From: Leidyana gryllorum EB-2025a
Taxonomy: Eukaryota; Protista; Apicomplexa
DNA: 64,000 nucleotides
Direction: 5' to 3'
NCBI GenBank assembly: GCA_048772705.1
Contig: JBLWGC010000205.1
Location: 103,656-167,655, forward strand
The notes below the pieces were generated by a model. That model worked only from the letters and a program-made list of their open reading frames with translations, had not been told where the DNA came from and ran no database searches. Shown here in pieces: positions 40,820 to 64,000 of this stretch. Both the position numbers and the translations under genes were made by a program. Every line of letters begins with the position of its first letter. The stretch's first letter is position 1.

Positions 40820-40855
<36 letters not shown>

Positions 40856-41591
40856 CGTGTGTGCGTGTACTACTCATACACACGTGTGTGCGTGTACTAC
40901 TCATACACACTTCTCCCGCAGTAAGGGAGTTTTGTTGATAATAGATAGTTTGACTGCTCACCTCTCGCACATAGGAAAGGGGTTTCATTCCGAGCGCCAT
41001 TGGGTTTCCAATATTGCATGGAATAATTCGATCAAAAGCTGTTTTGAGAAATAGATCACATAGATCTCGCATGTTGAGATTCAAACTCACGTTGATTTTC
41101 GATGTCTCGAGCCAATTCATTGGATCGCGCCAAGATGGGACCTCTCACCGCATACTGCGTAGGCCGACATTACACTTTCACTCAAAAGAATGTCCTCTCA
41201 CCTCGACCGCTTTGATTTTATCGGGAATGCCATCCATGGAGAAACCAGCTGAACGATTTCCAATAGAGGGAAAGCGAGCAGAGTTGGGGGAGGGAGTGGA
41301 GGTCGTGGAGGCACTTTCGCGAGGTGAATGTGCCAAGATGTGCGGTGCAGACTTGGGCTCGGTTATGAGCAGTGAGTTTCTAATACTGTTGTCTGATGTC
41401 GGTGACTTCATGGTGCCAGAAGAAGCTGCTGTATTCAGTGATTCGAAGACAATATTACGTCCCAAAAAAGGGTGCTTTTGCAGTCTCCTTTTGTAAACGA
41501 TTTTGCCGTCCCAGTCAGAGTCTTTTCCGCCCCAACCGACCCAATCTGAACCCATAAACTCCTCTATATCACTGTCTGTCATCTCGTCCAT
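39363..41591 (-). CDS. Alanine aminotransferase (PLP fold I) with N-terminal extension, multi-exon
   Basis: VE|YAVRG, CNIGNPMALG, GAYTESLG, PIPQYPLYSA, ADEVYQENCY, PLP-Lys SLHSSSKGFYGECGFRGG, GAMYAFPRI and GFGQRPGTHHIRLAILP. Confidence 0.93.
40821..40910. repeat. (CA)n microsatellite followed by a 27-bp tandem duplication, intronic
   Basis: CA run, then cacgtgtgtgcgtgtactactcataca twice. Confidence 0.9.
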
Positions 41592-49787: not shown

Positions 49788-51741
49788 CTACCCATCCATG
49801 GCATACTCGTGGTGGTCATCCTCTGGCGGGTTGGGAGGGGGCACTGACGGGCTTTGCAGAGGTAATTGCCATCGGCTTAGTGTTCTGCAATGGTTGCTGG
49901 TGAACTGGCGTCTCATCCAGTCGGATTTAAAGTCGATCAGTCCGATATTGAATGGCGTTCGGCCTTTGACGGAGTATCCTGTGGGGTCTGTCGCTGCCAA
50001 TACTTGGTGGTACCAGTTGTTGAATGTGTGGGATCGGAGTGCGTCTCGCTCCCATCCCTCGCTAACGGCCGAGTCCCTCTTGTGCATGAGACAGATGAGT
50101 GCGGAGAAGGACTGCCAATAGAGTTCGAGTCTGTCATAGTGCTGTATTTCGGCGGCGTAGAGCTCGAAGAGGCTCTCAACACCGATTCTTGAGAATATCT
50201 GGCGGAGTGTTTCGTCCCGATAGTCCCCGCTGACCATCTCCAATATAACCTGAGACCAAAACGGCTGATAGCACTGAACCCCTCCAACACACAACCTGAT
50301 TGGTCGGTCCGTCCGTCTCCGCACAGCGTCGAGTATCAAATACCAGTAAATAATCAATTCAGAACTACTCAGATAATCTGGAATGGCTAAGTGCTGTACT
50401 CTGTACGTCTCCAGGACATCGAGGATAAATACCGCGACCCTATGGGCCTCGGTATCGTCTTCGTCCAATTCCCCTACCCATTCTGCCACAACTTGACACC
50501 CATCTGACACTCGTAGCGGAGGCAAATCGTCCTCCAATTGCTCTTCGTCGTAGTTGAGCTCAATCTCCACTCTCCGGGCGATCTCCAACCGTCGATTGAG
50601 GGTCCGAGACTCTTCACGTAACCTGTCCAATGTCACACGCTGGATGTGTTTGGTGAGCATCGGCCCTCTGTTCGACCTTGCCTCGTCGACGGCGGCCCCC
50701 TGTTTCTTTCTCACGGCCTCTGGGTGGATTGGAATGGCCCAAATACCCTCAGGGGTATCTTCTAACCCGTCCATTGGCACCACACATTCGGTGGAGGACA
50801 CACAAATGGGTTCGGTGACGTCCCATAAGGCCCGATGCAGGGTCGACTCTCTGTTCTTCATGTGACGCCAGTAGTTTGTGAACCCGTTGTACACGCCGTC
50901 AGCCTCTCTAAGCAACGGGATGTCGAAATAGTGCCAAAACTCACTTGGGATCTCCCGGCCATCGCGGCCTTTCACCGTCCGTTTCCGGGATGTCATGAAT
51001 AAACCACACATGCATCCCATCAATCTCATACTCGGCCTCGGGACGGATGACGGTGATTCCGGGTTGCTGCTCAGCGGACAGAGTCTCTCCTGCGTCGCTG
51101 TTAGTGATTAAAGGCTCACTCCCTGGCACCGCGGGCGAGTTGGTGATCGGTTGATACCCTCTGGGATACTGCGTGTCAATGATGACATGCGAATGAGATG
51201 TCTTCAAAAGATCTCGAATCCGTGACTCCCGACTGTTCAATATATCACACTTCAAGTACGGCAAACTGTCCCGATGGATTGCCAGAGTCCGCATCCTTTC
51301 GGCCTCGACAGTCACCGGGGCGGTAAGGGAACCGCGAACATAGAGATAACGAAGATTGGGAAATGTCAACACTGCTCGATCGTGACTGGTCTCCGTGGCA
51401 CATAGTGTCAGGTTTTGCACACTCGCCGATCCAATAGACGAAAAGGCTTCTGCGACCTCCCAACAAGAGTCTCCATAGATTGTCAAAGTGGTGACATTCC
51501 TCCCAAGATACTTCAAACCAGCGCGACCCCCCTTCTCTACGATGTCAATTCCCTGAACAAATTCTTCCCACACCACGTCATCAAACCATGCATGGGCTCT
51601 CTCAAGATAATTCCCAACCCACTGCCTACACCGACGTGATACCATACCTAAGCAGACCAGGTCTTTCAGTGATAGAAACTGGAATAGAGTTGGTGCAAAC
51701 ATTCGGATCGAACGCCCGTATAAGAAGTCATTTAACTTCAT
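49788..51741 (-). CDS. F-box/LRR-like protein (638 aa, one intron), divergent paralog of the tandem-array genes
   Basis: F-box-like PTLFQFLSLKDLVCLGMVSRRCRQWV. The 37-nt GTGAGT..TTAG intron at 50944-50908 joins ORFs 50941..51753 and 49788..51029 in frame. Motifs are shared with the array proteins. Confidence 0.75.
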
Positions 51742-52096
51742 CCTCAAATTCAAACTATAAAGTGCACGTGATGAAGACTAAATCGATCCGTCGTGCGCTC
51801 ACAACTCAGTTGCTGTCGAATTACCAAAAGCGTACAGCCTCTCCGTCCGACACCACTACACTCGAATTTCCTGCCTCAGATCGAGCCACACTCATATGAC
51901 CCCAGACCAGCTGCATGTTAACTTAAAACACGAGTTCCAACATGCCCAAAAAATTGGGTCTGGTCACCCAAACCACAGCCACCTTGGTTCGAAAGCCAGA
52001 TAGCCGACACACGTGTCTCCATCTGCACACACCCCTTCATTATGCACTCCGGAAGAAGGCCGTTGAAATGCTGGAAAAAATACTCATCAATCCATT

Positions 52097-52729
52097 ATGA
52101 CGGAGGCTAATAAGTTGTGCATCTTCGAACGCCTGCGCAAGGGCGAACTCATATCGCCTGAGGATCCAGACGAGCACTTGCTGCTCGAAGCCTCCTATGC
52201 CACGAGGAAATTGCTGATTCAGATGAACAACGCCCCCGACCCCATCCAAGTGAGACATCTACTGAGTCAAATCACCAACACTGACATCGATCCCACTGTT
52301 AACGTCTTCACCCCCTTACACATCAATTATGGGAAGAATATAAAACTTGGGAAAAATGTTTTCATTAACTTCAACTGCACAATGCTGGATCTCGGCGGCA
52401 TCACCGTTGAAGACGACGTACTCATAGGACCTAATGTCAGCATACTGTCGGAAGGACACCCGATTTCCTTGCAAGACCGCCACGCACTCGCCACTGGAGC
52501 TATTCTAATAAAAAGACATGCCTGGATCGGCGCAGGAGCCGTCATAATGAAAGGCGTGACCATCGGCGAAAACTCCATTGTCGCCGCAGGCGCCATAGTC
52601 TCAAAAGATGTTCCTAGCAACACCATCGTTGGTGGCATTCCTGCCAGAACTCTTAGGGATATCGATGTGCCTGCTGCTAAGACTACGGCTCAAGTCCTCA
52701 GTGGTGGCGATTTAGACAAGCACTCTTGA
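52097..52729 (+). CDS. Sugar O-acetyltransferase (maltose/galactoside acetyltransferase-like, hexapeptide repeat), bacterial type, intronless
   Basis: PLHINYGKNIKLGKNVFINFNCTMLDLGGITVEDDVLIGPNV..GHP and AWIGAGAVIMKGVTIGENSIVAAGAIVSKDVPSNTIVGGIPAR. Confidence 0.93.
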   Translation: MTEANKLCIFERLRKGELISPEDPDEHLLLEASYATRKLLIQMNNAPDPIQVRHLLSQITNTDIDPTVNVFTPLHINYGKNIKLGKNVFINFNCTMLDLGGITVEDDVLIGPNVSILSEGHPISLQDRHALATGAILIKRHAWIGAGAVIMKGVTIGENSIVAAGAIVSKDVPSNTIVGGIPARTLRDIDVPAAKTTAQVLSGGDLDKHS

Positions 52730-52920: not shown

Positions 52921-53052
52921 TGCGGACGTATTTTGACAGTCGGGCCTATCAGTTTCTTAGAGCTGAGCCAGCGAGTGTCTGTGTAAGCTCACATTCCGGA
53001 AGAAAATGGAGGATCTGAGTCCATATGATTCCACTGAAGCCGATTTGCCTCA
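52921..53052 (-). pseudogene. 5' remnant of an array F-box gene
   Basis: MRQIGFSGIIWTQILHFLP is intact, then a ~34-bp foreign insertion with an early stop. Homology is lost below about 52920. Confidence 0.8.
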
Positions 53053-53344
53053 TTTAACGGTCGACACCTTAACCGGAAACACACACTGCACACACACCGA
53101 ACACCGATCGACGGAGCCGCCGTGAGGCCCGATAATTGAAATGGAATCGTTCGAGCGCTTCCCAGAGCATGTCTGTCATCTTAGCGTTGCATCATTAATA
53201 ATAGTGTGCACAACAGTACCGGTACAATCGTATCAGTCAACAGTATTGCATTTTACATTTTGATCGGTTGCAAAATCGACATCTATTAAATTCATAATGT
53301 GTCATCATTGTGGTGCACAACACAAACTTATTACCGCTCAAATC

Positions 53345-55296
53345 TCAGTATCTCCCCGACTCGCCGAATGCTGGCCACAGAGCCTTTCTGATTCCCCAAT
53401 CGTGAAGTTCTGAGAATCTTCCTGACCACAGTCGATCAATGAGCCATTTGTGATCAGATGGCAAACGTCCTATTTTCATTTGAGACAGTCCCCACTTCGG
53501 CTGTGCCGCTTCTGACACCTCAGTGAGCAGTCCCCGATACCATAGCTGGATATGTATCAGCGGGAGTCTGCCGAAGCCTGAATGAATACCCCGCCAATAC
53601 TTTATCTGCCCATTCAGCCGTCGCCAAGCCGCCGACTTGTCGGTGAACGAGGAAAGCAAATAGTCATTTATCTCGCGCTTTTCAACTCCTAAACTTTCCA
53701 GAACGAGGGCCGCAGTCTCATCTGTGTAGCGGCCGGATATCATCTCGCTGATCGCTCGAGATAGAGGGCGCGTGAAAATCACAACACTCTGGAACCCGTG
53801 CCGCAGTCGCTTCCCAGAGGACTTCCAGATTGTGTGAGCGATCAAATAAAGCCACACGAGGTTCTCGAAGTATCCGTCCCAATCACTTATTGCCACACTG
53901 TCAATATCGAATCGCTCCAGAGCCTCTCTATATTCCGGGGCGTTCAGCCCATCCACAACCGGGGAGACACCACGGAGACCAAAGCTGAGGACGCGATGGC
54001 TCCCAGAGGGCCGTGGACAGTGTTCTGGTCGCCACGTTAGCCTTAGCTGCTGCCAAACGCTCAGCGTCAGTTCAACTCGCTCCAATGAGGCTAAGTCAGA
54101 GAAGTCTAAGGTGTCCACTCTCACTGTCGGGTCGGCAGTATTCACATAAACGAGACTCTTAGCCGTCGACCACTCCAACGAGTCAATTTTGAATCCGTCA
54201 GGCCATAAATAAATAACCCCATCCGATTCCGGAACAAATCCGGGGTCCTCTCGGAGTAGTGGTAGTCGCCAGATCCAATCAGGGAGGGTGGAGAGATCTC
54301 CGTTCTCAGCCAACTTCAGCCACGAAGGACACAGTATCTCACCAGGAGGCCCTTCACGCCGCAAGAACACAGAAAGCCACAGACACATACGCACCAATCC
54401 TTCCACACATTCTTTCGGAAAGAATTCACGTCGGCATCTCCACTGCTCTCTCAGGAAATCCCGAACGATTCCACATTCACTGTAGCATTACATCACAATA
54501 TTTCCAACAAACTGATCGCTTACCGCTCAGTCGTCGGACATCCGTCCTCGAGATGGACACTCCCTGGTGCCGTGGGATTATTGTGTGTCCACGCCGACGG
54601 CTGTGGCAATAGCAGGTGACACACACCTGTCTTCTTCCATCTATCATCGTGGGCGGAATCGTCTCCAAAATCGAGATTCCTCACTCCCCGCCACGCGTAC
54701 TCCATCCTCGTGTCGGCTACGTATATCACTGGAAACGGCGTCGAGGGAAGGGCGGCTGTGAAAGGTATCACAACCCATTCGGCTAATGAATGGGCTATGC
54801 GATCCCGACATGCTGCCGGCGCAATCAGTGTGCGTAGCTGTGGAGCAATCAACCGCAGACGAGTGAAGGGTGGTATGTCGACATCCACAGAAAATATTTC
54901 CAAAAGCGGAAGGGTCCACGTAATCTGGAGGAGATCCCTGGATAGGGTCCGACCCACCAAGTGCAACAATCTGAGTACGGGGAGACCCTTGACCATCAAA
55001 CGTTTCAGAAACTCAGCGGGTGCGTCATTCTGGTCCGCGGTTCCGTCTATTTCCACATACAAAAAGGTCAGCGATTCCCGAGAGCGATCCACCCAGCTCC
55101 AGAACCAAGAAGTGTGATATATCTGTCGTAGCAATACATCACAGAGGTACAGGTGTGTGGATCGGAATGGGGATGAAGGCGATTCAATGAGTGCGCGGAA
55201 GTATTTTGACAGTCGGGCTATCCGTGAAAGCTCGCATGTCGGAAGAAAATGGAGGATCTGAGTCCATATGATTCCACTGAAGCCGATTTGCCTCAT
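53345..55296 (-). CDS. F-box/LRR-like protein copy A (635 aa; intron 54523-54480)
   Basis: F-box-like IWTQILHFLPTCELSRIARLSKYFRALIESP and LxxLxL repeats. A 44-nt GTAAGC..CTACAG intron joins the 258-aa and 353-aa ORFs in frame (773+1135 nt). Confidence 0.8.
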
Positions 55297-55581
55297 TTAA
55301 CGGTCGACACCTTAACCGGAAACACACACTGCACACACATCGAACACCGATCAGCGGCCGCCGTGAGGCCCGATAGTTGGAATGGAATCGTTCGAGCGCT
55401 CCCCAGAGCGTTTCTGTCATCTTAGCGTTGCATCATTAATAAAAGTGATGCACAACTGTACCGGTACAATCGTATCAGTCGACAGTATGGCACATTTTGA
55501 TCGGTTGCAAAATCGACATCCAGCAAATTCATAATGTGTCATGATTGTGGTGCACAACACAAACTTATTACCGCTCAAATC

Positions 55582-57530
55582 TCAGTATCTCCCCGCCTCG
55601 CGGAATGCTGGCCACAGAGCCTTTCTGATTCCCCAATCGTGAAGCTCTGAGAATCTTCCGGACCACAGTCGATCAATGAGCCATTTGTGATCAGATGGCA
55701 AACGTCCTATTTCCAGTTGAGACAATCCCCACTTCGGCTGTGCCGCTTCTGACACCTCAGTGAGCAGTCCCCGATACCACAGCTGGATATGTATCAGCGG
55801 GAGTCTGCTGAAGCCTAAATGAACAACCGGCCAACACTTTATCTGCCCATTCAGCCGTCGCCAAGCCGCCGACTTGTCGGTGAACGAGGAAAGCAAATAG
55901 TCATTTATCTCGCGCTTCTCAACGCCGAAACCTTCCAGAACGAGAGTCACAGTCCCATCTGTGTAGCGGCCGGATATCATCTCGCTGATCGATCGAGATA
56001 GAGGGCGCGTGAAAATCACAACACTCTGGAACCCGTGCCGCAGTCGCTTCCCAGAGGACTTCCAGATTGTGTGAGCGATCAAATAAAGCCACACGAGGTT
56101 CACGAAGTTTCCGCCCGAATCACATATTGCCACACTGTCAATGTCGAACCGCTCCAGAGCCTCTCTATATTCCGGGGCGTTCAGTCCATCCACAACCGGG
56201 GAGACACCACGGAGACCAAAGCTGAGGACGCGATGGCTCCCAGAGGGCCGTGGACAGTGGTCTGGTCGCCACGTTAGCCTTAGCTGCTGCCAAACGCTCA
56301 GCGGAAGTTCAACTCGCTCCAGTGAGGCTAAGTCAGAGAAGTCTAAGGTGTCCACTCTCACTGACGGGTCGGCAGTATTCACATAAATGAGACTCTTAGC
56401 CGTCGACCACTCCAACGAGTCAATTTTGAATCCGTCAGGCCATAAATAAATAACGCCTTCCGATTCCGGAACAAATCCGGGGTCCTCTCGGAGTAGTGGT
56501 AGTCGCCAGATCCAAGTAGGGAGGGTGGAGAGATCTCCGTTCTCAGCCAACTTCAGCCACGAAGGACACAGTATCTCACCAGGAGGCCCTTCACGCCGCA
56601 AAAACACAGAAAGGCACAGACACATACGCACCAATCCTTCCACACATTCTTTCGGAAAGAATTCACGTCGGCACCTCCACTGCTCTCTCAGGAAATCCCG
56701 AACGATTCCACATTCACTGTAATATTATATCACAATATTTCCAACAAAGTGATCCCTTACCGCTCAGTCGTCGGACATCCGTCCTCGAGATGGACACTCC
56801 CTGGTGCCGTGGAATTATTGTGTGTCCAAGCCGACGGCTGTGGCAATAGCAGGTGACACACACCTGTCTTCTTCCATCTATCATCGTGGGCGGAATCGTC
56901 TCCGAAGGCGCTATCCCTGACTCCCCGCCACGCGTACTCCATCCTCGTGTCGGCTACGTATATCACTGGAAACGGCGTCGAAGGAAAGGCTGTGAAAGGT
57001 ATCACAACCCGTCTGGCTAATGAATGGGATATGCGATCCCGACATGCTGCCGGCGCAATCAGTGTGCGTAGCTGTGGAGCAATCAACCGCAGACGAGTGA
57101 AGGGTGGTATGTCGACATCCACAGAAAATATTTCCAAAAGCGGAAGGGTCCACGTAATCTGGAGGAGATCCCGGGATAGGGTCCGACCCACCAAGTGCAA
57201 CAATCTGAGTACGGGGAGACCCTTGACCATCAAACGTTTCAGAAACTCAGCGGATGCGTCATTCTGGTCCGCGCTTGCAAATATTTCCACAAACAGAAAG
57301 GTCAGCGATTCCCGAGAGCGATCCACCCAGCTCCAGAACCAAGAAGTGTGATGTATTTGTCGTAGCAATACATCACAGAGGTACAGGTGTGTGGATCGGA
57401 ATGGGGATGAAGGCGATTCAATGAGTGCGCGGAAGTATTTTGACAGTCGGGCTATCCGTGAAAGCTCGCATGTCGGAAGAAAATGGAGGATCTGAGTCCA
57501 TATGATTCCGCTGAAGCCGATTTGCTTCAT
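55582..57530 (-). CDS. F-box/LRR-like protein copy B (intron 56760-56717)
   Basis: Same structure as copy A, with a GTAAGG..TACAG intron. Confidence 0.8.
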
Positions 57531-57815
57531 TTAACGGTCGACACCTTAACCGGAAACACACACTGCACACACACCGAACACCGATCGGCGGCCGCCGTGA
57601 GGCCCGATAGTTGGAATGGAATCTTTCGAGCGCTCCCCAGAGCGTTTCTGTCATCTTAGCGTTGCATCATTAATAAAAGTGATGCACAACTGTACCGGTA
57701 CAATCGTATCAGTCGACAGTATGGCACAATTTGATCGGTTGCAAAATCGACATCTATTAAATTCATAATGTGTCATCATTGTGGTGCACAACACAAACTT
57801 ATTACCGCTCAAATC

Positions 57816-59764
57816 TCAGTATCTCCCCACCTCGACGAATGCTGGCCACAGAGCCTTTCTGATTCCCCAATCGTGAACCTCTGAGAATCTTCCCGACCAC
57901 AGTCGATCAATGAGCCATTTGTGATCAGATGGCAAACGTCCTATTTTCATTTGAGACAATCCCCACTTCGGCTGTGCCGCTTCTGACACCTCAGTGAGCA
58001 GTCCCCGATACCACAGCTGGATATGTATCAGCGGGAGTCTCCCGGAGCCTGAATGAACACCCGGCCAACACTTTATCTGCCCATTCAGCCTTCGCCAAGC
58101 CGCCGACTTGTCGGTGAACGAGGAAAGCAAATAGTCATTTATCTCGCGCTTCTCAACGCCGAAACCTTCCAGAACGAGGGCCACAGTCCCATCTGTGTAG
58201 CGGCCGGATATCATCTCGCTGATCGATCGAGATACAGGGCGCGTGAAAATCGGAACACTCTGGAACCCGTGCCGCAGTCGCTTCCCAGAGGACTTCCAGA
58301 TTGTGTGAGCGATCAAATAAAGCCACACGAGGTTCACGAAGTGTCCGTCCCAATCACTTATTGCCACACTGTCAATATCGAATCGCTCCAGAGCCTCTCT
58401 ATATTCCGGGGCGTTCAGTCCATCCACAACCGGGGAGACACCACGGTGACCAAAGCTGAGGACGCGATGGCTCCCAGAGGGCCGTGGACAGTGTTCTGGT
58501 CGCCACGTTAGTCTCAGCTGCTGCCAAACGCTCAGCGGCAGTTCAACTCGCTCCAATGAGGCTAAGTCAGAGAAATCTAAGGTGTCCACTCTCACAGTCG
58601 GGTCGGCAGTATTCACATAAACGAGACTCTTAGTCGTCGACCACTCCAATGGGTCAGTTTTGAATCCGTCAGGCCATAAATAAATAACCCCACCCGATGC
58701 CGGAACAAATCCGGGGTCCTCTCGGAGTAGTGGTAGTCGCCAGATCCAAGTAGGGAGGGTGGAGAGATCTCCGTTCTCAGCCAACTTCAGCCACGAAGGA
58801 CACAGTATCTCACCAGGAGGCCCTTCACGCCGCAAGAACACAGAAAGCCACAGACACATACGCGCCAATCCTTCCACACATTCTTTCGGAAAGAATTCAC
58901 GTCGGCATCTCCACTGCTCTCTCAGGAAATCCCGAACGATTCCACATTCACTGTAGCATTACATCACAATATTTCCAACAAACTGATCGCTCACCGCTCA
59001 GTCGTCGGACATCCGTCCTCGAGATGGACACTCCCTGGTGCCGTGGGATTATTGTGTGTCCACGCCGACGGCTGTGGCAACAGCAGGTGACACACACCTG
59101 TCTTCTTCCATCTATCATCGTGGGCGGAATCGTCTCCGAACTCGAGATTCCTCACTCCCCGCCACGCGTACTCCATCCTCGTGTCGGCTACGTACATCAC
59201 TGAAAACGGCGTCGAAGGAAAGGCTGTGAAAGGTATCACAACCCATTCGGCTAATGAATGTGATATGCGAGCCCGACATGCTTCCCGCGCAATCAGTGTG
59301 CGTAGCTGTGGAGCAATCAACCGCAGACGAGTGGAGGGTGGTATGTCGACATCCACAGAAAATATTTCCAAAAGCGGAAGGGTCCACGTAATCTGGAGGA
59401 GATCCCTGGATAGGGTCCAACCCACCAAGTGCAACAATCTGAGTACGGGGAGACCCTTGACCATCAAACGTTTCAGAAACTCAGTGGACGCGTCATTCTG
59501 GTCCGCGCTTGCAAATATTTCCACACACAGAAAGGTCAGCGATTCCCGAGAGCGATCCACCCAGCTCCAGAACCAAGAAGTGTGATATATCTGTCGTAGC
59601 AATACATCACAGAGGTACAGGTGTGTAGATCGGAATGGGGATGAAGGCGATTCAATGAGTGCGCGGAAGTATTTTGACAGACGGGCTATCCGCGAAAGCT
59701 CACGTGTCGGAAGAAAATGGAGGATCTGAGTCCATATGATTCCACTGAAGCCGATTTGCCTCAT
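57816..59764 (-). CDS. F-box/LRR-like protein copy C
   Basis: Same structure; the donor variant GTGAGC retains GT. Confidence 0.8.
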
Positions 59765-60056
59765 TTAACGGTCGACACCTTAACCGGAAACACACACTGC
59801 ACACACACCGAACACCGATCGACGGAGCCGCCGTGAGGCCCGATAATTGAAATGGAATCGTTCGAGCGCTTCCCAGAGCATGTCTGTCATCTTAGCGTTG
59901 CATCATTAAAAATAGTGATGCACAACAGTACCGGTACAATCGTATCAGTCAACAGTATTGCATTTTACATTTTGATCGGTTGCAAAATCGACATCTATTA
60001 AATTCATAATGTGTCATCATTGTGGTGCACAACACAAACTTATTACCGCTCAAATC

Positions 60057-62008
60057 TCAGTATCTCCCCGACTCGCCGAATGCTGGCCACAGAGCCTTTC
60101 TGATTCCCCAATCGTGAAGTTCTGAGAATCTTCCTGACCACAGTCGATCAATGAGCCATTTGTGATCAGATGGCAAACGTCCTATTTTCATTTGAGACAG
60201 TCCCCACTTCGGCTGTGCCGCTTCTGACACCTCAGTGAGCAGTCCCCGATACCATAGCTGGATATGTATCAGCGGGAGTCTGCCGAAGCCTGAATGAATA
60301 CCCCGCCAATACTTTATCTGCCCATTCAGCCGTCGCCAAGCCGCCGACTTGTCGGTGAACGAGGAAAGCAAATAGTCATTTATCTCGCGCTTTTCAACTC
60401 CTAAACTTTCCAGAACGAGGGCCGCAGTCTCATCTGTGTAGCGGCCGGATATCATCTCGCTGATCGCTCGAGATAGAGGGCGCGTGAAAATCACAACACT
60501 CTGGAACCCGTGCCGCAGTCGCTTCCCAGAGGACTTCCAGATTGTGTGAGCGATCAAATAAAGCCACACGAGGTTCTCGAAGTATCCGTCCCAATCACTT
60601 ATTGCCACACTGTCAATGTCGAACCGCTCCAGAGCCTCTCTATATTCCGGGGCGTTCAGTCCATCCACAACCGGGGAGACACCACGGAGACCAAAGCTGA
60701 GGACGCGATGGCTCCCAGAGGGCCGTGGACAGTGTTCTGGTCGCCACGTTAGCCTCAGCTGCTGCCAAACGCTCAGCGGCAGTTCAACTCGCTCCAGTGA
60801 GGCTAAGTCAGAGAAGTCTAAGGTGTCCACTCTCACTGTCGGGTCGGCAGTATTCACATAAACGAGACTCTTAGCCGTCGACCACTCCAATGGGTCAGTT
60901 TTGAATCCGTCAGGCCATAAATAAATAACGCCTTCCGATTCCGGAACAAATCCGGGGTCCTCTCGGAGTAGTGGTAGTCGCCAGATCCAATCAGGGAGGG
61001 TGGAGAGATCTCCGTTCTCAGCCAACTTCAGCCACGAAGGACACAGTATCTCACCAGGAGGCCCTTCACGCCGCAAGAACACAGAAAGCCACAGACACAT
61101 ACGCACCAATCCTTCCACACATTCTTTCGGAAAGAATTCACGTCGGCATCTCCACTGCTCTCTCAGGAAATCCCGAACGATTCCACATTCACTGTAGCAT
61201 TACATCACAATATTTCCAACAAACTGATCGCTTACCGCTCAGTCGTCGGACATCCGTCCTCGAGATGGACACTCCCTGGTGCCGTGGGATTATTGTGTGT
61301 CCACGCCGACGGCTGTGGCAATAGCAGGTGACACACACCTGTCTTCTTCCATCTATCATCGTGGGCGGAATCGTCTCCAAAATCGAGATTCCTCACTCCC
61401 CGCCACGCGTACTCCATCCTCGTGTCGGCTACGTATATCACTGGAAACGGCGTCGAGGGAAGGGCGGCTGTGAAAGGTATCACAACCCATTCGGCTAATG
61501 AATGGGCTATGCGATCCCGACATGCTGCCGGCGCAATCAGTGTGCGTAGCTGTGGAGCAATCAACCGCAGACGAGTGAAGGGTGGTATGTCGACATCCAC
61601 AGAAAATATTTCCAAAAGCGGAAGGGTCCACGTAATCTGGAGGAGATCCCTGGATAGGGTCCGACCCACCAAGTGCAACAATCTGAGTACGGGGAGACCC
61701 TTGACCATCAAACGTTTCAGAAACTCAGCGGGTGCGTCATTCTGGTCCGCGGTTCCGTCTATTTCCACAAACAGAAAGGTCAGCGATTCCCGAGAGCGAT
61801 CCACCCAGCTCCAGAACCAAGAAGTGTGATATATCTGTCGTAGCAATACATCACAGAGGTACAGGTGTGTAGATCGGAATGGGGATGAAGGCGATTCAAT
61901 GAGTGCGCGGAAGTATTTTGACAGACGGGCTATCCGCGAAAGCTCACGTGTCGGAAGAAAATGGAGGATCTGAGTCCATATGATTCCACTGAAGCCGATT
62001 TGCCTCAT
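60057..62008 (-). CDS. F-box/LRR-like protein copy D
   Basis: Same structure as copy A. Confidence 0.8.
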
Positions 62009-62300
62009 TTAACGGTCGACACCTTAACCGGAAACACACACTGCACACACACCGAACACCGATCGACGGAGCCGCCGTGAGGCCCGATAATTGAAATGGA
62101 ATCGTTCGAGCGCTTCCCAGAGCATGTCTGTCATCTTAGCGTTGCATCATTAAAAATAGTGATGCACAACAGTACCGGTACAATCGTATCAGTCAACAGT
62201 ATTGCATTTTACATTTTGATCGGTTGCAAAATCGACATCTATTAAATTCATAATGTGTCATCATTGTGGTGCACAACACAAACTTATTACCGCTCAAATC

Positions 62301-64000
62301 TCAGTATCTCCCCGACTCGCCGAATGCTGGCCACAGAGCCTTTCTGATTCCCCAATCGTGAAGTTCTGAGAATCTTCCTGACCACAGTCGATCAATGAGC
62401 CATTTGTGATCAGATGGCAAACGTCCTATTTTCATTTGAGACAGTCCCCACTTCGGCTGTGCCGCTTCTGACACCTCAGTGAGCAGTCCCCGATACCATA
62501 GCTGGATATGTATCAGCGGGAGTCTGCCGAAGCCTGAATGAATACCCCGCCCATACTTTATCTGCCCATTCAGCCGTCGCCAAGCCGCCGACTTGTCGGT
62601 GAACGAGGAAAGCAAATAGTCATTTATCTCGCGCTTTTCAACTCCTAAACTTTCCAGAACGAGGGCCGCAGTCTCATCTGTGTAGCGGCCGGATATCATC
62701 TCGCTGATCGCTCGAGATAGAGGGCGCGTGAAAATCACAACACTCTGGAACCCGTGCCGCAGTCGCTTCCCAGAGGACTTCCAGATTGTGTGAGCGATCA
62801 AATAAAGCCACACGAGGTTCTCGAAGTATCCGTCCCAATCACTTATTGCCACACTGTCAATGTCGAACCGCTCCAGAGCCTCTCTATATTCCGGGGCGTT
62901 CAGTCCATCCACAACCGGGGAGACACCACGGAGACCAAAGCTGAGGACGCGATGGCTCCCAGAGGGCCGTGGACAGTGTTCTGGTCGCCACGTTAGCCTC
63001 AGCTGCTGCCAAACGCTCAGCGGCAGTTCAACTCGCTCCAGTGAGGCTAAGTCAGAGAAGTCTAAGGTGTCCACTCTCACTGTCGGGTCGGCAGTATTCA
63101 CATAAACGAGACTCTTAGCCGTCGACCACTCCAACGAGTCAATTTTGAATCCGTCAGGCCATAAATAAATAACCCCACCCGATGCCGGAACAAATCCGGG
63201 GTCCTCTCGGAGTAGTGGTAGTCGCCAGATCCAATCAGGGAGGGTGGAGAGATCTCCGTTCTCAGCCAACTTCAGCCACGAAGGACACAGTATCTCACCA
63301 GGAGGCCCTTCACGCCGCAAGAACACAGAAAGCCACAGACACATACGCACCAATCCTTCCACACATTCTTTCGGAAAGAATTCACGTCGGCATCTCCACT
63401 GCTCTCTCAGGAAATCCCGAACGATTCCACATTCACTGTAGCATTACATCACAATATTTCCAACAAACTGATCGCTTACCGCTCAGTCGTCGGACATCCG
63501 TCCTCGAGATGGACACTCCCTGGTGCCGTGGGATTATTGTGTGTCCACGCCGACGGCTGTGGCAATAGCAGGTGACACACACCTGTCTTCTTCCATCTAT
63601 CATCGTGGGCGGAATCGTCTCCAAAATCGAGATTCCTCACTCCCCGCCACGCGTACTCCATCCTCGTGTCGGCTACGTATATCACTGGAAACGGCGTCGA
63701 GGGAAGGGCGGCTGTGAAAGGTATCACAACCCATTCGGCTAATGAATGGGCTATGCGATCCCGACATGCTGCCGGCGCAATCAGTGTGCGTAGCTGTGGA
63801 GCAATCAACCGCAGACGAGTGAAGGGTGGTATGTCGACATCCACAGAAAATATTTCCAAAAGCGGAAGGGTCCACGTAATCTGGAGGAGATCCCTGGATA
63901 GGGTCCGACCCACCAAGTGCAACAATCTGAGTACGGGGAGACCCTTGACCATCAAACGTTTCAGAAACTCAGTGGACGCGTCATTCTGGTCCGCGCTTGC
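62301..64000 (-). CDS. F-box/LRR-like protein copy E (5' end outside window)
   Basis: Same structure, truncated by the window edge. Confidence 0.78.

Follow-up and report, generated by a model that had tools for sequence, protein, structure and literature searches.

We analyzed a window of 64,000 nt at the end of contig JBLWGC010000205.1 (167,655 bp) of the apicomplexan Leidyana gryllorum EB-2025a; the last position of the window is also the last position of the contig. The window ends in a tandem array of F-box genes on the minus strand (53345–64000), which consists of 4.76 units of 2234–2244 bp, the last unit being cut by the contig end. The five copies were named A to E by rising coordinate, and the mosaic, the haplotypes and all tests described below refer to the assembled sequence. 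The copies are arranged head to tail with start-to-start distances of 2237, 2234, 2241 and 2244 bp, and their pairwise nucleotide identity is 95.6–99.2%. A protein search and a search with 544 bases of DNA against the same genome did not reveal near-identical copies on any other contig.

Each unit harbors two long open reading frames (ORFs) of 257/258 and 353 amino acids on the minus strand. The first ORF starts with ATG, its stop codon overlaps a GTAAG donor motif, and 86 nt downstream there is an AG from which the second ORF continues in frame. Most likely, an 86-nt GT-AG intron joins both ORFs into a single two-exon gene, with the acceptor site predicted from the frame. With this predicted intron, the joined frame is open in all copies (621/622 codons), and the splice signals are identical. 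Gene A extends from 53345 to 55296 (exon 1 at 54524–55296, predicted intron at 54438–54523, exon 2 at 53345–54437, stop codon at 53345–53347) and has a predicted product of about 621 amino acids. Gene B (55582–57530, predicted intron 56675–56760) and gene C (57816–59764, predicted intron 58909–58994) are of an older, divergent type. Gene E (62301–64000, predicted intron 63394–63479) is of a young type, and its exon 1 is truncated by the contig end. Gene D (60057–62008, predicted intron 61150–61235) has a body of the same young A/E type, joined to 530 bp of 5' sequence and an upstream spacer of the C type. All five are open genes with an upstream region of their own, apart from the cut in copy E, and the sole fragment is a terminal remnant of a further unit below gene A (52985–53344, minus strand). 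It comprises the spacer and the first 69 nt or so of exon 1 and is 99% identical to the upstream region of the C/D type.

The products of exon 1 and exon 2 were searched and folded separately. Exon 1 of copy A contains an F-box motif at residues 10–42 (55171–55269, minus strand; Pfam PF00646, E 3e-5, 24.2 bits with a cut-off of 20.5), and a match to PF12937 stayed under the cut-off of that family. The AlphaFold model of exon 1 predicts helices at residues 8–15, 20–29 and 31–38 with values of 82–89 in the predicted local distance difference test (pLDDT), corresponding to a three-helix F-box fold at the N-terminus; alternating strand-helix repeats and then a disordered tail follow in the model. 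The top Foldseek rows for exon 1 were weak and comprised FBXL3, KDM2A-SKP1, FBXL5, Skp2 and TIR1. Rows for the leucine-rich repeats (LRRs) of FBXL and NLR proteins appeared only at E 0.04–0.5, and all fold matches had E ≥ 0.04 and a template modeling (TM) score ≤ 0.31. Pfam gave no LRR match at E ≤ 1, and feature matches to LRR_4 clusters in the Atlas scored 0.81–0.82, under the 0.9 level. The exon-2 product was modeled with confidence (pLDDT 76.7, predicted TM score 0.82) and ends in a helical region without any structural match; for this domain, nothing beyond generic beta/alpha arrangements was matched in Pfam, PDB sequences, Foldseek, VIA-align wide or the Atlas. The partners of a Skp1-cullin-F-box (SCF) ubiquitin ligase are present in the same genome, with one Skp1 (PF01466, 92 bits) and at least two cullin loci (PF00888). 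We concluded that the array genes probably encode substrate adaptors of SCF ubiquitin ligases.

The array belongs to a large gene family. A search of the 15.5-Mb assembly with the exon-2 product gave at least 83 matches, which form at least 20 tandem arrays with the same two-exon layout, and we put the size of the family at roughly 100 genes. DNA identity within arrays is 92–98% (92–99% when the A–E array is counted), compared with about 30% amino-acid identity between arrays. A divergent member lies just outside the A–E array (49788–51753, minus strand); it has a 270-amino-acid ORF with a weak F-box (E 0.0025, below the cut-off), and its second ORF matches exon 2 of the array in a search of the same genome (E 6.9e-5). 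A dozen or more family arrays reach a contig end that lacks telomere repeats, and the repeat TTTAGGG in three consecutive copies was found neither at the array-bearing contig ends nor elsewhere in the assembly. The number of arrays at or within a few kb of contig ends (C36, C133, C2, C204, C186, C47, C9, C213, C173, C177, C92, C102 and C205, the last being the contig studied here) is far above random placement. The assembly may break at the arrays, or else the arrays are located close to chromosome ends.

Outside this genome, an exhaustive profile search of 1.84 billion representatives retrieved 16 relatives, all of them singletons from Logan assemblies. The two that we examined (runs ERR10900103 and ERR10900105) showed similar tandem arrangements, and these runs could serve for a comparison of the family with a sister species. 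One Logan relative was 48% identical to the family member on contig C177 and therefore stems from a related but different organism. A word-based protein search with exon 2 and with a profile of 27 sequences had no matches, the relatives of about 620 amino acids or more being outside its length window. We regard this F-box family as restricted to its lineage, probably the gregarines. For Toxoplasma, a relative of this lineage, one account gives a figure of only eighteen F-box proteins (PMC6685633).

The first-pass annotation of this DNA had listed amino-acid markers whose distribution over the copies conflicts with any single tree, and our codon table contained every one of them as described. 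Codon 311 reads D/T/T/D/D in copies A to E (PDW or PTW), codons 328 and 330 read E,E,A,E,A and D,E,G,E,G, and codons 342 and 344 read I,I,T,T,I and S,S,P,P,S. In exon 1, codon 21 is C,C,R,R in copies A to D, codon 183 is L,F,F,L,L and is accompanied by a 3-bp indel, and codons 85 and 86 are G,A,A,G,A and T,S,S,T,S. The ASADQ marker of copy E lies within the last 30 bases of the contig (63973–63999), where the consensus is least reliable. All four combinations of PDW/PTW with ASGG/ES were indeed seen at codons 311 and 328, but at a distance of 51 nt rather than about 45 nt as given before.

A single tree of five sequences admits two compatible splits of two against three copies. In the region covered by all five copies we observed seven different splits, two-against-three and one-against-four splits taken together. 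Recombination tests of the PHI (pairwise homoplasy index) and GENECONV type, as proposed in the first-pass annotation, were significant for copies A–E; our versions are simple counting methods that treat sites as independent. The PHI-like test, which scores incompatibility among the ten nearest informative sites in 10,000 permutations of site order, gave p 0.02 for the five copies (alignment columns 545–2244) and p 1e-4 for the four full units. The Hudson-Kaplan method required a minimum of 7 recombination events (Rmin). In the GENECONV-like test, copies C and D agreed at 29 consecutive polymorphic sites (columns 39–527), and copies A and D agreed at 47 consecutive polymorphic sites (columns 542–1367), with p 2e-4 in each case. 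Among the 19 differences between copies A, D and E, 16 carried the state of copy B or C, as compared to about 2% expected for new mutations (p 4e-25). The array on C36 and an array of 79–93% identity in the middle of the 1.7-Mb contig C230 were also mosaic (PHI p 2e-4 each).

Most of the long-range conflict disappeared in another register, in which the repeat begins at column 545, within exon 1, and runs up to column 544 of the following unit. In this register, shifted by 544 columns, the modules E', D' and A' were 98.5–99.2% identical, compared with 95.3–96.4% identity of C' and B' to everything else. A single split into young and old modules was backed by 32 of 52 informative sites, and the PHI test still gave p 5e-4. 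The remnant at 52985–53344 consists of spacer sequence of the C/D type and fits the shifted register as well. The fit of modules and remnant suggests that unequal crossover amplified a young module whose junctions lie near columns 527–542. The junction between C-type 5' sequence and A-type body in copy D (61759–61774, minus strand) marks the register boundary of this young module.

On top of this pattern, short patches of foreign sequence were visible on the minus strand. Copy D has two of them at 60891–60933, one with the B state (60930–60933) and one with the C state (60891–60898). In the copy alignment, copy E shows a C-state patch with the PASGG marker at 63178–63184; its C-like tract at 63973–63999 falls into the last 30 bases of the contig and is unreliable. 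Copy A has four single or paired sites in common with C or B between 54085 and 53906. Conflicting sites come as groups of two to five linked neighboring changes, transversions among them (columns 546–572, 1361–1371 and 1403–1410). Possible tract lengths are 7 to about 90 bp for the short patches and about 530 bp or more for the long tract. Published interlocus conversion tracts cluster at 50–200 nt, including those between the F-box paralogs fog-2 and ftr-1 of C. elegans (PMC3966223), and the tract lengths in the array fall within the reported range of such events (PMC3966223). Sequence exchange by unequal crossover together with short-tract gene conversion, the two processes already put forward in the first-pass annotation, is the best explanation of the marker conflicts, considering the PHI results, the tracts, the donor-matched differences and the register. 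Gene conversion as the mechanism of the short exchanges is inferred from these patterns.

The same annotation went further and saw a combinatorial diversification system in the array, which our data do not support. The density of variable sites was 6.5% in the upstream spacer, 7.0% in the intron and 5.6–6.0% in the exons. The gene-wide ratio of non-synonymous to synonymous substitution rates (dN/dS, Nei-Gojobori) was 0.56–0.69 for the divergent pairs, and dS (0.05–0.065) was near the non-coding divergence (0.035–0.05). Within the array, there was neither a silent donor archive nor an expression-site layout, and conserved recombination signals in the flanks were not observed. Further family arrays are mosaic as well, and long-range conflict is largely lost upon a register shift of about 540 bp. 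Since the non-coding sequence varies like the coding sequence, gene-wide dN/dS is below 1, the copies are intact and sister arrays are mosaic too, we consider the exchange as the generic fate of near-identical tandem repeats.

Clustering of the amino-acid changes in short patches was supported. Non-synonymous variable codons were clustered (dispersion 1.49 in windows of 10 codons, p 4e-4), and 45% of the gaps between them were three codons or shorter, compared with an expectation of 28% (p 6e-4). Synonymous variable codons were not clustered (p 0.5–0.8). The dense clusters comprised 23 non-synonymous and 4 synonymous codons, compared with 40 and 27 elsewhere (p 0.014). The three patches quoted before (FLYVEIDGT, SDWDGYFEN and KYWRGIHSGF, with their variants) are present as written. 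Patches were defined in the A–E array and then tested in ten or eleven other arrays of the family. FLYVEIDGT and KYWRGIHSGF lie in segments that were hypervariable in ten independent arrays as well, whereas variation of SDWDGYFEN was peculiar to the A–E array.

The FLYVEIDGT patch is part of a segment comprising residues 78–94 of exon 1 (55015–55065 in copy A, minus strand). In the 11 other arrays, the non-synonymous density in this segment was 2.75-fold that of the rest (p 3e-6), and the synonymous density was 1.67-fold. The A/D and B/C types are told apart by five substitutions within 8 nt (55040–55047 in copy A and the corresponding position of the other copies), each of which is non-synonymous (D-G-T versus F-A-S). 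The KYWRGIHSGF patch belongs to a loop at residues 266–282 of the exon-2 ORF (53561–53611 in copy A, minus strand), which has 8 non-synonymous and 0 synonymous changes in the A–E array. In ten other arrays it showed 36 non-synonymous and 7 synonymous changes in 201 codon cells, compared with 133 and 94 in 2954 codon cells outside it. This amounts to a 4-fold non-synonymous density (p 2e-11) at a synonymous density of 1.1-fold. Two further segments were conspicuous in the other arrays: residues 205–210 of exon 1 (non-synonymous density 4.8-fold, p 3e-5; synonymous density 1.46-fold) and residues 310–311 of exon 2 (6.4-fold, p 2e-4), where no synonymous change occurred. Residues 172–183 (SDWDGYFEN), 209–218 and 230–239 of exon 2 and residues 160–174 of exon 1 were not hypervariable in the other arrays.

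For the loop at 266–282, pooling over 11 arrays gave a ratio of the proportions of non-synonymous and synonymous changes (pN/pS) of 1.41, as compared to 0.47 for the rest of exon 2. Its pN was 1.9-fold the exon-wide pS (p 4e-4, or p 6e-4 without the A–E array). In the exon-2 model, the loop is situated with low pLDDT at the end of a helix (254–274), and the alignment of copies A–E revealed no shuffled combinations in it. A hand count assigned 18 of the 39 variable exon-2 residues to predicted helices or strands and 21 to coil, without enrichment. Family-wide entropy at the variable sites of the A–E array was weakly higher (1.91 versus 1.69, p 0.08). The substitution pattern suggests that the hypervariable segments are free of constraint at the least, and probably subject to diversifying selection. 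Their earlier assignment to a substrate-binding surface is unproven; the exon-2 domain has no Pfam, PDB-sequence or fold match.

Taken together, ordinary recombination between repeats, i.e., concerted evolution, combined with a few fast-changing protein segments and no dedicated shuffling system, explains the array best, and we assign a probability of about 0.6 to this explanation. Copies with 95–99% identity would be mispaired by the ordinary homologous-recombination machinery of the cell. Unequal crossover may have created and spread the young repeat module with its boundaries inside exon 1, and short-tract interlocus gene conversion would then have transferred pieces between young and old copies, from a few bp to about 100 bp in length. 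This would result in a mosaic across spacer, intron and exons alike. A few segments, mainly residues 78–94 of exon 1 and 266–282 of exon 2, appear in many arrays to take up amino-acid changes as fast as expected under neutrality or faster, and diversifying selection on target recognition would be a likely cause. Conversion may sometimes recombine such selected variants as a by-product, without a dedicated mechanism.

Several points weigh against this explanation. The mosaic was read from assembled sequence, and the copies are predicted genes. The array abuts the contig end, as do many arrays of the family, which indicates that these repeats are hard to assemble. Taken one by one, the short patches did not reach significance in the tract test, and recurrent mutation could account for four conflicting single sites, which are transitions. 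With regard to the fast-changing segments, pN/pS of the loop at 266–282 was not significantly above 1 (p 0.22).

The first two of these points lead to an alternative in which the real array is longer or polymorphic in the population, and the short patches, perhaps also the placement of the young units, are chimeras of consensus building or polishing. We regard such an artefact as unlikely, although it has to be taken seriously: the contig stops inside unit E and the missing part is on no other contig, the dozen or more family arrays at contig ends lack telomere repeats there, and one foreign tract of copy E falls into the last 30 bases. However, open frames and identical splice signals are retained in all five copies. 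The mosaic was also present in the more divergent array (79–93% identity) that lies mid-contig on the 1.7-Mb contig and is less prone to cross-mapping, and the long blocks were coherent over 29 and 47 consecutive polymorphic sites.

Conversion could also be selected and quasi-programmed, recombining cassettes of a recognition surface into a combinatorial adaptor repertoire. The excess of non-synonymous codons in the dense clusters (p 0.014), the two patches that are hypervariable across arrays with pN about 1.9-fold pS, and the position of the D junction and of the terminal tract of E within the hypervariable segment of exon 1 are in agreement with this idea. It is nevertheless improbable. Exchange and variation extended to spacer and intron in equal measure, and gene-wide dN/dS was about 0.6. 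Silent donors were absent, conserved recombination signals in the flanks were not observed, each copy is a complete gene, and the loop at 266–282 showed no shuffled combinations in the A–E array. We likewise give little credence to the version in which selection favors conversion events that recombine variants of two or three recognition loops and thereby provides a fast-turning repertoire of ubiquitin-ligase adaptors. If it were true, the adaptors would be aimed at changing targets such as host or symbiont proteins or selfish elements, and the arrays would be comparable in function to contingency gene families that recombine in other parasites. A history without any exchange, in which hypermutable sites mutated repeatedly or in parallel, would account for the isolated transitions at columns 1504, 1545, 1677 and 1683, but is hardly credible for runs of two to five linked changes with transversions, for 16 of 19 differences that match existing states (p 4e-25) or for the significant PHI test.

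Two other features of the window were recorded. An intronless ORF of 210 amino acids on the plus strand (52097–52729), located between the divergent paralog and the array, carries motifs of hexapeptide-repeat acyltransferases (Pfam Hexapep, E 2.6e-14). At 40821–40910, there is an (AC)18 microsatellite with a perfect 27-bp duplication behind it.

Mosaicism of the array is an expected consequence of tandem repeats and represents ordinary concerted evolution. The members of the F-box family should not be treated as evolving independently, and exchange distorts trees and dN/dS site tests that are based on array copies. Copy number and haplotypes of the family are probably under-assembled. Residues 78–94 of exon 1 and residues 266–282 and 310–311 of exon 2 are the foremost candidates for target contact in a domain that is otherwise unrecognizable. 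These candidate segments are of interest in a group of parasites whose relatives have few F-box proteins.

Programmed diversification by gene conversion operates on the variant surface glycoprotein (VSG) genes of trypanosomes, on vlsE of Borrelia and in the conversion of chicken immunoglobulin genes by pseudogenes. The A–E array resembles these systems in the segmental copying between similar sequences, which leads to new combinations of variable patches. Unlike them, it has no expression site with silent cassettes and all of its copies are complete genes. Moreover, its variation extends beyond cassettes, and flanks, intron and spacer vary equally.

With regard to the encoded proteins, the exon-1 model predicts an N-terminal F-box followed by strand-helix repeats, as in the FBXL adaptors Skp2, FBXL3, FBXL5 and TIR1, but the array protein differs from these by the lack of an LRR match in Pfam and by weak fold matches. 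Lineage-specific expanded families of F-box adaptors under positive selection have reportedly been described for nematodes and plants, in work that is attributed to Thomas (Genome Research, 2006). The domain C-terminal to the F-box in the family described here is not FBA, FTH, Kelch or a recognizable LRR, and selection above neutrality is suggestive here, which sets it apart from the nematode and plant expansions. It shares with them the large tandem families (at least 83 exon-2 matches), the conserved F-box next to a fast-changing C-terminal part and the concentration of non-synonymous change at few positions.

A close parallel is found in tandem multigene families with interlocus (ectopic) conversion and unequal crossover, for example fog-2/ftr-1 of C. 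elegans (PMC3966223). The A–E array differs in having five or more tandem copies, in its occurrence in a parasite of the apicomplexan type and in that the events are deduced from one assembly. It shares with such families the mosaic copies, the high identity within and low identity between arrays, and tracts of a few to a few hundred nucleotides that involve introns, spacers and exons; with fog-2/ftr-1, it also has the F-box gene class in common (PMC3966223).

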